From Rebecca billardiae RCC1528 (Eukaryota > Protista > Haptophyta): a stretch of 64,000 nucleotides of DNA. A program made the position numbers and the translations under genes. Within the stretch, counting starts at the first letter, position 1, and each line of letters opens with the position of its first letter. Of the stretch, positions 6,561 through 32,300 are shown in pieces. Under the pieces are notes generated by a model, which saw only the letters and a program-made list of their open reading frames with translations, searched no databases and was not told where the DNA came from. The stretch is taken from assembly GCA_965240325.2 (NCBI GenBank), contig OZ251232.1, forward strand, positions 2,108,001 to 2,172,000, written 5' to 3'.

Positions 6561-6967
6561 CCCGCGGCCAACAAAGAGATAACGAGTCAACAGAGAAGAG
6601 GGCGGGTCAATTGGACATCTGCAGCGGGCGGCGGCCCTCCGCCGCGAAGGCTGGTGGGCGCCAAAGAGAACGAGCACGTCTCAGGTCGCGCTTCTCGCAG
6701 CCTCCGCCTAGTTCCATGAGTGCCGTACTGCCGTGCACACGGCATAGAACGACAGCCTTTCAAGGCGGCATGACGTGTGTGCGGACTCAACGATAAGAGG
6801 AAGGGCGGAATCCGGGGCAAGGCGCGGCTGCGCTAGCGCGCGTGGGTCCCCAGAGCAACCCAGTCCCGAGCCGCTTCACGCCTTCATCACGCGCTTTTTT
6901 TCCTGCGAGAGAGCGTTCCGAGTTCGATGCCCATGCCTCGGCTGGTGCTAGGGGGTCAACTAGAAAC

Positions 6968-7033
6968 GCGTTTTCCCGCTGCGTCACCAGAGACTTTGAT
7001 GGCGCAGCGGGAAACGCTTCGCTGTCTTGCCAT
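6968..7033. repeat. Diverged copy of the E1 palindrome
   Basis: gcgttttcccgctgcgtcaccagagactttgatggcgcagcgggaaacgcttcgctgtcttgccat aligns to 5247-5316. Confidence 0.8.
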
Positions 7034-7054
7034 CGTCATCAGCACTCATCACCA

Positions 7055-10003: not shown

Positions 10004-10489
10004 GTGCGACGGTGCCGGCGGCGGGCGGTCTAGTCATCATCGACATCAGCAGCCCGGCCACTGAGCCGTCTCGGACGGCCTCAGTCACGCCCGCGCGCGC
10101 ATGGTGCACGTGCGCCCGGGGGACGGGGGCACGCGCCCACGGGGGCGCTGCGACACTCCGCGCTGCGCACGACGACCGTATACTGCTGGTACTACTCACG
10201 TACCGTAGTCTTCGAGACCGGCTACGTCCGCCAGCCAGGTGCCACTGCCAGTCGGGCCAGTTACGCCGTCGCGCGCACATAGTCCCGCGGTGCCGATGAC
10301 ACTAAGTGTCACGTGTGCCGCGCGCACACTGGCTACGTCCGCACCGGCACGACCATATTGCTTGCGCTGATGGTGATATTGGATCATCACGGGCAGGCCG
10401 GACGCGTATACCCGTAACCCGCCACCAACTACCATAACCAAGCGACAGGCCACTGACACTCGCCGAGCGACGCATGGACCCTCACCCTG

Positions 10490-10612
10490 TGTTAAGCTTT
10501 GCGCCGAGTCCTTAACCACTCGGACACGCAAAAGCTCCCACGACGCGTCGTGGGGGCTTTTGCGTGTCCGAGTGGTTAAGGACTCGGCTCAAAAGCTTAA
10601 CATAACGCGGTT
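10490..10612. repeat. Near-perfect head-to-head palindrome at the E2 tail (centre cacgacg|cgtcgtg, 10545/10546)
   Basis: 10490-10545 is a slightly diverged reverse complement of the arm starting at 10546. Confidence 0.92.
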
Positions 10613-10858
10613 CCTTCCGGCGGGTTTGTTCTTTAGCCTGGTGTTGTTCCTTCACCAGCGTTCCGACGGGCCGCGGGCCATCCGCCGTCCCGCTCTCATG
10701 AGCCTTTCAGGGACGGATCTTCACCCCGTTCAGCGGGAGTGAAGAAAGAAGCGCACTTTCGGGCGAAAGAGCGTTGCGCAACCGGATTCGAAACCGCGTT
10801 ATGTTAAGCTTTTGAGCCGAGTCCTTAACCACTCGGACACGCAAAAGCCCCCACGACG
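10546..10858 (-). mobile_element. tRNA-headed fold-back element E2 (67-bp perfect TIRs)
   Basis: 10546-10612 and 10792-10858 are exact inverted repeats. Minus strand reads GTGTCCGAGTGGTTAAGGA (A box/D-arm), CTCAAAA, and GTTTCGAATCC (B box). Shares GTGCGCTTCTTTC and AGAACAAACC with E1. Confidence 0.7.
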
Positions 10859-11023
10859 CTCCCTGCCGCAAACGTCACACAAACCCAGCGCACCGTTTGG
10901 GTGCTTGGCCTTGGGCCCAGGAGAGGCGCGGCCGCGAGCCGGGCAACCCATGACGGCGTTGGGAGCGACGGCGGATGGGTTGCAGATGGGCACCCAGGCC
11001 CAAGAAGACTTGATAGTGCTTGT

Positions 11024-29343: not shown

Positions 29344-32300
29344 ATGGGCGTGCCCGCGTTCTACCGGTGGCTCGCGGAGAAGTACCCGAAGACGGTCGTC
29401 GACTGCATCGAGGCGGAGGCCCCGCCGCGCGACGACGGCACGAGCGACTTCTCGGCGGTCGACATCCGCGAGCCCAACCCGAACGGCGTCGAGGTCGACA
29501 ACCTGTACCTGGACATGAACGGCGTGATCCACCCGTGCTCGCACCCGGAGAACGGGCCGCAGCCCACGAGCGAGGACGAGATCTTCGCCAACATCGAGCG
29601 CTACATCGACCGCCTCGTCGCGGCCGTGCGGCCGCGCCGGCTGCTCTTCATGGCCGTCGACGGCCCGGCGCCGCGCGCCAAGATGAACCAGCAGCGCTCG
29701 CGCCGGTTCAAGGCGGCGAAGGACGGCGCGGAGCGCGAGGCGGAGGAGGCGCGCCTCCGCGCCGAGTGGCACGCCCGCGGCCTCACGCCGCCGCCCAAGC
29801 GCGACGCGGGCGCGTTCCACTTTGACTCGAACGTGATCACGCCCGGCACGTCCTTCATGGCGCGGCTCGCGGACGCGCTGCGCGCGTACGTGGCGCGCCG
29901 CCTCGCGAGCCAGCCGGGGTGGCGCGGGCTCGCGGTGATCCTGAGCGACGCCTCCGTCCCCGGCGAGGGCGAGCACAAGATCATGCAGCACATCCGCGTG
30001 CAGCGCTCGCTGCCCGGGTACGACGCCAACATGTGGCACGTCGTGCACGGGCTGGACGCCGACCTGATCATGCTCGCGCTGGCGACGCACGAGCCGCGCT
30101 TCATGATCCTGCGCGAGATGGTGTTCTCGCCCAGGGACCGCAAGAAGCGCGCCGGCCTCGGCGCCGCCGCCGCCGCCGAGGACGAGGAGGACGAGCGCGA
30201 GGCGCAGGCGGCGCTCGCGCTGCGGCGCGGCGGCAAGCCGCTGCAGCTGCTGCGCATCAACACGCTGCGCGAGTACCTGCGCGTCGAGTTCGGCGAGATG
30301 TCGTTCGAGGGCACGCCCGAGGCGTTCGACCTGGAGCGCGTGATCGACGACTTCGTCTTCCTCTGCTTCTTCGTGGGCAACGACTTCCTGCCGCACATGC
30401 CCGCGCTCGAGATCCACGACGGCGCGATCGACACGCTGATGGGCATGTACGCGACGTCGATGGCGGAGCTCGGCGGCTACGTGACGACGTCGGGCGAGAT
30501 GGACCTGCGCCGCGCGGAGCTGCTGCTGCGCAAGGTGGGCGCGTACGAGGAGGACGTCTTCGCGCGCCGGCGCAAGCGCGACGCGGGCAAGCGCCGCTCG
30601 ATCGACGAGCGCGCGCGGCTCGTGCAGCAGGAGCAGGCGAGCGCGCACGCGGTCGCCAACGGCGGCGCGTCGCCGTACGGCGCGCTCTACCCGCCGCGCG
30701 GCGCGGAGGCGCTCAAGCTGTGGAAGCAGCTCGAGGCGTTCGCGGACGCGCGCAAGTACGACGAGCGCCTCGAGCTCGAGCCGCAGGGCGCGCAGCTCCG
30801 CGCGTGCGCCCACCTGTACTGCCACATGCTCGGGCTGCGCGCGGACGCGGGCCACAACAACGTGACGCTGGTGGTGACACTCTCGCTCCCGCACCCGACG
30901 GAGGAGGACTCGGCGCACGCGCGGGGGCGGAAGGGCGCGGCGCAGCCGAAGGCGGCGTGCGCGGCGAGCGGCGGCGGCGGCGCCGAGCTCGCCGCGGACG
31001 CCGCGCCGCCCGCCGCGGCGGACGCCGCCGCCGCCGGCGCCGCGGGCGCGCGCGCGCGCACCGCGGACGAGCGGCGCGCGGACGAGGACGCGAAGCAAGC
31101 CGCCGCGGAGGAGGCGGCGCGCGCGAGCCGCTTCGCCGTCGAGCTCAAGCTCGCGCTCGACCGGCGCGACACGGTGCTGCAGTCCGTCCCGGACACGATC
31201 TCGTACGGCGCCCCCGGCTGGCGCGACCGCTACTACTCGCAGAAGCTCGGGATCGGCGCGGACGAGCCCGGCCGTCTGCGCGAGGTGGTGACGGCGTACG
31301 TGGAGGGGCTGTGCTGGGTGCTGCGCTACTACTACCAGGGGGTGCAGTCGTGGGGCTGGTTCTACCCGTACCACTACGCGCCGTGCGCGTCGGACATGAA
31401 GCACCTCGCCGAGCTCTCCGCGCGCGTGCGCGCCTTCGAGCTGGGCACGCCGTGGTCGCCGCTCATGCAGCTGATGGCGGTCTTCCCGGCGCGCTCCGGT
31501 GAGCTGCGCGCGCGCGCGCGCGCACGCGCGCGCGCGCGAGCTGAAACCGCGGCGCGACGCGGCGGCGCGGCGCGGCGCGGCGCGGAGCTGCGCGCGTGGG
31601 CTGCGCGGAGCGCGCGCGCGGGCACGAGCCGCGCACCCCGCCGCGGCGCGCGCCCCCGCCCCGCGCAGGCCACGCGCTGCCCCCCGCGTACCGCGCGCTC
31701 ATGTCGTCGCACGGCTCACCGGTGATCGACTTTTACCCGCAGGACTTTGCGCAGGACCTCAACGGCAAGAAGTTCGGCTGGCAGGTGCGCGCGCGCGCGC
31801 GCGCGCGCGCGTTCCCGAGCGGCCGGCCGGCCGGGGCGCGCGCGGTGCGCGGAGACGGCGCGCCGGCTGAGTGCCGCTCTGCCCCGCTCTGCCGCGCCTC
31901 CGCGCGCGCGTGCCGCGCCTCCGCGCGCGCGCCGCGGCGCACTGTGCGCGCCGCTTTTGCAGGCGATTGCGCTGCTGCCCTTCATCGAGCACGTGCGCCT
32001 CGCCTCCGCGCTCGAGCCGCTCAAGCACACGCTCAGCGAGGTCGAGCGCACGCGCGACTCGCACGGCTCGACGCTCGTCTTCACGCACGCGGAGTCGGCG
32101 CTCGGGCTCGAGCTCCGCCCACTCGCCGGCGGCGCGGGCGCGGACTCGGGCGTCGTGGCCGGCGCGCGCAGCTTTGCCCCCGCGCAGCGCGTGGGCGGCG
32201 TGCCGTACGGCGGCACCGCGCGCAGGCCGGCGGAGCTGCTTCACGCCGGCGCCGTGCTGCGCGCCACGGCGGACCAGCCGCGGCCGGAGCCGCACAAGTC

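Follow-up and report, generated by a model that had tools for sequence, protein, structure and literature searches.

The window considered here, the whole stretch of 64,000 nucleotides from Rebecca billardiae RCC1528, carries a short repeat, E2, whose perfect inverted arms and tRNA-like head raise the question of whether it is a structured RNA gene, a DNA transposon or a retroelement. With its limits corrected it occupies 371 bases (10490-10860) and is bordered by an identical pentamer, CCCTG, immediately outside both ends (10485-10489 and 10861-10865). The inverted repeat, initially annotated as perfect over 67 bp, is 68 nt long and 100% complementary (10545-10612 versus 10792-10859). A third arm abuts it on the left, such that 10498-10545 and 10546-10593 form a palindrome with no spacer, the head-to-head arrangement which had been noted at one end. 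The window copy thereby comprises three copies of one unit of approximately 57 nt. A D-arm-like 18-mer (GTCCGAGTGGTTAAGGAC) occurs three times in the 64 kb, in each case within E2, where 0.01 occurrences are expected.

The sense strand of E2 is the minus strand of the window, since it is only there that an arm runs into a B-box-like motif and that the motifs shared with a second family, E1, appear in the order in which E1 has them. Read along this strand the window copy is aberrant, being composed of half a terminal palindrome (hereafter P) starting from the palindrome centre, the interior, and a full P. Its 5' end is a 57-nt sense arm (10802-10858) containing the tRNA-Leu-like 5' half and the A box; two extra bases (AG in the sense direction, 10859-10860), also present in copy 'a' of the C13 dimer, lie between the palindrome centre and the duplication. 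The non-coding interior covers the 199 nt between the 57-nt arms (10603-10801). At the sense 3' end the inner arm of 57 nt (10546-10602), from which the inverted-repeat match runs on to 10612, completes P with the outermost arm of 56 nt (10490-10545). The latter ends in ...CA on the sense strand (the plus strand starting TGTTAAGC), and has three differences from both inner arms, making it a separate sequence variant.

To judge from the alignment, the E2 arm is derived from the 5' half of a tRNA-Leu. The genome contains a genuine tRNA-Leu(TAG) gene (G000:C27:1085241-1085322) with which the arm agrees at 25 of 26 positions, over a span that includes the A box (TGTCCGAGTGG), the D arm and the 5' strand of the anticodon stem; the T-arm region of that gene together with nine bases of its 3' trailer aligns with the start of the E2 interior. 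The tRNA-like head with its Leu/Ser-type D arm, as first described, is thus real but partial: the anticodon stem is broken, ARAGORN calls no complete cloverleaf in E2, and the Rfam tRNA model finds no match in the element even at E<=10. In both E2 and E1 the border between terminal repeat and interior coincides with the anticodon loop. The LTR-like arm holds the A box and D arm, and the B box is reached 13-17 nt into the interior. In the window copy the B-box-like motif (GGTTTCGAATCC, 10784-10795, minus strand), which aligns with the T arm of tRNA-Leu and falls outside the terminal repeat, has a supernumerary T in comparison with the canonical GGTTCGAGTCC of older copies. The plus-strand arm continues instead into GGTTCCTTCC, in agreement with the earlier remark that the antisense copy loses its B box.

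The A-box and B-box-like sequences are found on one strand only and at normal spacing, and on this basis transcription of E2 by RNA polymerase III (Pol III) is plausible. Each arm also contains a run of four T residues which might stop Pol III early, and this weighs against reading E2 as a Pol III-driven retroelement. The C27 tRNA-Leu(TAG) gene itself (C27:1085241-1085360; L043 241-360) has no four-T run within about 80 nt downstream, only stretches of the CTTTC type; nine bases of its trailer (CTTTCGCCC) are found again in E2. It may be that this alga terminates Pol III transcription at unusual signals. The sole tRNA called by ARAGORN in the window, a tRNA-Val of 92 nt (29562-29653, minus strand), is embedded in GC-rich sequence of coding-like character and was dismissed as an apparent false positive.

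About ten E2 loci are present in the 72-Mb genome (41 contigs). Over 314 nt the copies at C10 and in the window do not differ at all (100% identity), indicating that E2 moved very recently. The C10 copy also displays the layout typical of the family (P, an interior of some 200 nt, P), its 199-nt interior having a P on either side. The outer ends of P read TGTTAAGC...GCTTAACA, with TGCTAAC and TGTCAAGC as variants. Seven E2 insertions are flanked by 5-bp duplications, each of them different: CCCTG at the window copy, CTTCT at C10, TGTTA at the C13 dimer, CAATA at C23, ACATA on both sides of a solo P at C5 (C5:1365813-1365928), CATCA at a single arm in CAT-rich DNA at C8, and GAATA, with a slip of 1 nt, at C3. 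Five E1 insertions bear the same signature (AGCGA, GTGTG, TGGCG, CAGAT and GAATT). Ends of the TG...CA type combined with a target duplication of fixed 5 bp are the signature of retroviral-type integrases, and are seen in Copia and in those Helenus elements that depend on it. At five loci E2 is located in or beside a microsatellite. E2 is, in short, a mobile element and not a cellular RNA gene.

A third family of the same architecture, E3, was encountered at G000:C25:454900-455400 (L069 4895-5400). It has the ends TGTTGAGCC...GGCTCAACA, a different tRNA-like head of the Leu/Ser type, and an interior ending in a block similar to that of E2; single E3 arms are present at C7:2485900-2485970 (L044) and C17:1648610-1648680 (L045). 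Within the window, a diverged E1-like palindrome (6952-7035) whose arms are about 67-87% like those of E1 is situated 1.3 kb downstream of E1, which suggests that this intergenic region received older insertions of the same class. An 18-mer, allowed two mismatches, was also tried as a probe for further families and was discarded, having led to an unrelated repeat longer than 1.8 kb. This repeat (G000:C22:80971-82800 and at least ten other loci; L070-L073) is 98-99% identical among its copies and has internal tandem repeats of about 165 nt. Exact-pattern scans for relatives outside this genome drew a blank in metagenome and viral contig collections, which may omit the genome and its near kin.

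P is palindromic and hence at once a direct and an inverted terminal repeat; it behaves as an LTR that is its own reverse complement. The perfect TIRs of the initial annotation stand as regards the inverted repeats. A simple fold-back or TIR element it is not, since the repeat unit is LTR-like, a palindrome at the terminus with 5-bp duplications and ends of the TG...CA type. The solo P at C5, which has its own duplication, and similar solo copies of E1 have the form expected from recombination between LTRs. Head-to-head dimers of the structure P-interior(reverse)-P-interior(forward)-P are known for both E2 (C13) and E1 (C5), and as there is a single duplication around each of them, the dimers must have formed before insertion. 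The two arms of the central P in the E1 dimer share a private insertion, as though one arm were a copy of its partner.

A recurrent feature of these families is a break exactly at the palindrome centre. It is seen in the window copy, in C13 copy 'a', in the single arms of E2 and E3, and at the E1 junctions in C21, C18 and C22; on the sense strand both the window copy and C13 copy 'a' start with AG followed by the palindrome centre. Wherever the ends of E2 copies could be mapped, the 3' P (sense) was intact and the 5' P missing, halved or rearranged. In three E2 copies, moreover, the two arms of the 3' P, outer and inner, represent different variants.

The interior is well conserved, at 95-100% across six further copies and at about 85% in a single old one. 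Since MAFFT was uninformative in the comparison of E1 with E2, local alignment with shuffles was used, and it returned a sole significant match between the two interiors: the 13-mer GTGCGCTTCTTTC (10744-10756, minus strand), just after the tRNA-like head, which is exact and on the same (sense) strand in both families (score reached by two of 300 shuffles). A further sequence, CGTTATGKTAAG, forms the junction of interior and 3' P in E1 and E2 alike, where 0.02 are expected. The assertion that the two families have motifs in common and in the same order is accordingly borne out on the sense strand. The last 45 nt of the interior (10603-10647, minus strand) constitute a conserved block containing AGAACAAACC (10623-10632) and an 8-nt purine run; it aligns with E3 at a score which none of 300 shuffles attains, and in the C23 copy it is duplicated around a Copia insert. 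A 70-nt probe of this conserved 3' block retrieved E2 loci only. AGAACAAACC is kept in six young E2 copies, has a changed form in the C3 copy (80%-diverged) and a related form in E3; the block as a whole likewise persists in every young E2 copy and, altered, in C3. Together with the shared architecture, these few conserved motifs unite E1 and E2 in one class of mobile element, as had been suggested.

The other half of that suggestion, a structured functional RNA with conserved protein-recognition motifs, fared less well. The hairpins listed for the interior are present, and the interior folds merely marginally beyond its shuffles (z of -1.9 on the sense strand and a slightly better -2.5 on the antisense); it is the whole element which folds into a very stable panhandle. 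Covariation could not be demonstrated in the interior, the copies being too alike, so that nothing here shows a functional RNA. At the gathering threshold no Rfam family is found in the window, and in permissive mode the hits in E2 are below-threshold matches of generic hairpins to models of miRNAs and sRNAs, which we judge to be spurious. Nor does anything show a role in protein recognition for the shared motifs; to regard them as a terminator-like T-rich stretch, a site for plus-strand priming or a packaging signal would be guesswork.

Insertion of E2 takes place by an integrase-type reaction and its terminal repeat is LTR-like. Taking all of the above together, we think it somewhat more probable than otherwise that E2 is a non-autonomous LTR element of the TRIM type whose tRNA-like head is of the Pol III type, and that it owes its insertion to a DDE integrase of the retroviral class; the resident, currently active Copia elements are the most likely source of this enzyme. 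An RNA intermediate, transcription by Pol III, help from Copia and a U-turn step during copying would all belong to such a life cycle, and are inferred. With the A box belonging to the sense arm of P and the B box lying a little way into the interior, a complete type-2 Pol III promoter would exist at the 5' P only.

E2 does not evidently possess the two features by which ordinary LTR replication is recognised. By inspection there is no complement of a tRNA 3' end (TGG...) after the 5' P, the bases at that position being the sense T-arm of the tRNA-like head, and the nearest purine run, GGAAGGAA (8 nt), ends 9 nt before the 3' P, with no polypurine tract adjoining the LTR. One might tentatively imagine an LTR-type retroelement that dispenses with both tRNA primer and polypurine tract and in which the terminal repeat is remade in each cycle by a polymerase turning back at the 5' end of the Pol III transcript, i.e. 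at the palindrome centre, though we regard this as a rather doubtful proposition. In that doubtful case the tRNA half with its complement would serve as a built-in primer/template hairpin. On the preferred reading itself, the replicating molecule would start at the palindrome centre or 2 nt before it, and the second arm of P would be copied from the first by a U-turn or by strand transfer at the template end. A turn-back that ran on would presumably yield inverted dimers. One that failed would leave half-P ends, and the window copy (half P, interior, full P) would be a molecule of this kind that was integrated anyway. Palindromes of mixed variants would arise by copy-choice between co-packaged templates. 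It weighs against the scheme that a half-P end beside a clear duplication, outside simple-repeat DNA, is found in the window copy only. If true, a turn-back mode of replication would be one not described for integrase-dependent retroelements.

Two Copia families come into consideration as the source of the enzymes. In the first the LTRs are 100% identical within a copy and many copies are 97-99% identical to one another, so that the family is clearly currently active. Its 6.1-kb form encodes an integrase, a retroviral SH3-like domain and RVT_2, and a 3.4-kb form is a deletion derivative; the ends are TGTTGTATT...AACATCA (TGTTG... at the start), the duplications are of 5 bp, and the insertions sit in (TA)n. 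The second family starts with TGTTGAGC, which is identical to the first eight bases of E3 and to seven of the eight of E2 (TGTTAAGC). Both have GAGGGGGGG directly adjoining the 3' LTR. Young copies of the two families in (TA)n are exemplified by L065 4559-7981 (C13:1912559-1915981), L068 1282-7407 (C18) and L067 558-7736 (C16), and each family has, at the position expected of the primer-binding site, an 8-nt perfect palindrome (TGAGCTCA and TGCATGCA, respectively) and no TGG-type site. The initial annotation had proposed that the motifs shared by E1 and E2 be checked against the ends of autonomous retroelements. By short-word comparison, E1, E2 and E3 have their opening 5-8 bases in common with the two Copia families and otherwise share no interior or end block with them, a result that weighs against the preferred reading.

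At three of its loci E2 is found joined, at internal positions, to a Copia of the first family; none of 18 other loci that were checked touches Copia. At C7 the RNase H coding region of Copia passes straight into an E2 sense arm; at C8 the Copia 5' LTR and the first 180 nt of its interior are joined to the E2 interior and P; and at C23 a reversed Copia 3' end lies inside E2 between duplicated E2 blocks of 43 nt, one of the junctions being the exact LTR end. The composite at C23 exists twice, 15.6 kb apart (G000:C23:223685-224564 and C23:239275-240154), which implies a recent segmental duplication. Just upstream of the C7 Copia copy that ends in an E2 arm there is a large fold-back of inverted Copia LTR pieces (C7:2065788-2067287; L050 5788-7287) with perfect arms of 135 nt and inner pairs of 205 and 100 nt.

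The fusions fit co-replication of the two elements with template switching, for which they are suggestive only. They could also be the products of deletion or capture at the DNA level between neighbouring insertions, a possible origin given their common preference for microsatellites. A 9-nt direct repeat at the C7 junction fits a DNA-level deletion, and the absence of clean duplications around the chimeras as a whole weighs against co-replication with Copia. The first Copia family, with its TGTTG... ends, its 5-bp duplications and its occurrence in microsatellite sites of the type that E2 occupies, would be the likely helper of E2.

The perfect inverted repeats, the fixed 5-bp duplication and the TG...CA ends would also be at home in a MITE-like DNA transposon, in which the 57-nt arms are TIRs moved, without any RNA step, by an integrase-like DDE transposase (of the Ginger type, or a Copia integrase acting on DNA) and the solo palindrome is the minimal element. 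The fact that neither a primer-binding site nor an adjacent polypurine tract is seen speaks in its favour, as does the instability of palindromes in DNA, which could alone explain many of the breakpoints at the centre. One would then have hoped to meet a larger element with the same arms, and none is present among 53 genome matches to E2 and 71 to E1, in which all arm matches are small non-coding loci. It is also unexpected of a two-end cut-and-paste reaction that the non-canonical end of the window copy adjoins a duplication, and the inverted dimers inserted as single units and the mixed-variant palindromes fit copy-choice synthesis better. We consider such a transposon unlikely, if still deserving of attention.

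Considerably less can be said for a family of cellular Pol III RNA genes in which the repeats serve RNA structure. The boxes with their normal spacing on one strand, the panhandle, and the few motifs common to E2, E1 and E3 are what such a family might exhibit. On the other hand, target duplications at all well-defined ends, the occurrence of dimers and of solo and truncated copies, and a location in microsatellites are what marks a parasite and not a gene family, the interior scarcely folds better than its shuffles, and the window holds no Rfam family at gathering score; we regard this explanation as highly improbable. Slighter still are the prospects of a tyrosine-recombinase element (DIRS-, Ngaro- or Crypton-like) or a site-specific cassette, in which a circle would use the palindrome as its crossover site. 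The site is palindromic with a CG-rich centre, and a circle integrating through it would indeed leave inverted terminal arms. To our knowledge, tyrosine-recombinase elements make no target duplication, and with twelve insertions displaying 5-bp duplications at unrelated targets, and no conserved target site seen, integration of a circle by a tyrosine recombinase was rejected.

We return, then, to a TRIM-type LTR element, for which the nearest parallels are the LTR elements derived from small RNAs (Cassandra, Helenus and Ajax), a class grouped recently and reported from plants, fungi and animals (PMC10886601). Helenus was defined by Kojima in 2024 as miniature retrotransposons (TRIMs) with tRNA-like LTRs, and forms TRIMp3 together with Cassandra and Ajax; its members are non-coding, range from 311 to 1263 bp, and in fungi and plants have 5-bp duplications and depend on Copia (PMC10886601). 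E2 resembles these elements in being short and non-coding, with two terminal repeats and a tRNA-like sequence with Pol III boxes, and likewise in its TG...CA ends, its 5-bp duplications, its solo LTRs and the existence of several families in one genome. It differs in its LTR, in which two tRNA 5' halves in inverted orientation make up a perfect palindrome. Boxes A and B are both inside the LTR in Helenus, whereas the tRNA-like unit of E2 straddles the border of LTR and interior, leaving the B box outside. In Helenus no complementarity of the tRNA-like part to the primer site was found (Kojima; PMC10886601), whereas in E2 the tRNA-like part and its complement adjoin. In E2, further, no polypurine tract adjoins the 3' LTR and no tRNA-complementary primer site was seen by inspection; inverted dimers and half-LTR ends are frequent in elements of its type, and the host is an alga. 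E1, E2 and E3 would thus appear to work like the TRIMp3 class, the closest known kind, with a palindromic LTR in addition. In the literature searched, which gives partial coverage of the field, no account of palindromic LTRs composed of tRNA halves was found.

Other systems share one or another of these traits. Cassandra of plants is a non-autonomous LTR element with 5S rRNA sequence in its LTRs and a Pol III internal promoter (PMC10886601). E2 would likewise be of the non-autonomous LTR type with a promoter from a small RNA gene, in this case a tRNA; the 5S-derived Cassandra, unlike E2, has ordinary direct LTRs, a primer-binding site and a polypurine tract, and no palindrome. In the fungal GalEa Copia elements, which have TGT...CA ends and 5-bp duplications, a 'Conserved Hairpin Site' replaces the primer-binding site (PMC5445492). 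Their short palindrome right after the 5' LTR may be comparable to the 8-nt palindromes which the Copia families of this alga have there, and to the GACGTC of E1, although GalEa elements are autonomous and their LTRs ordinary. SINEs derived from tRNAs have in common with E2 a tRNA-like head with A and B boxes, short length and the lack of coding sequence. They are without terminal repeats, and have LINE-like or A-rich tails and duplications of variable length, none of which applies to E2; with no 3' tail of the LINE type, inverted arms for ends and duplications that are always of 5 bp, a SINE was rejected as an identity for E2. In the self-priming of Tf1, 11 nt of the 5' end are paired to the primer site, and a palindrome of the whole LTR is not part of the mechanism. 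It is established that an LTR element of the Tf1 type can prime reverse transcription with its own RNA, folded back on itself, and needs no tRNA for this step (cited in PMC5445492). For E2, self-priming would at this stage be only hypothetical.

Elements of this type scatter tRNA-like promoter pieces and long perfect palindromes, fragile and prone to recombination, across the genome, which is of relevance to its annotation. They would also provide a natural test case for how, in an integrase-dependent element, ends are defined and copying is started without the usual primer site and purine tract, and the very young copies and an active Copia partner make them experimentally tractable. With respect to the known systems, an algal version with palindromic LTRs built of tRNA halves would widen the class of LTR elements derived from small RNAs.
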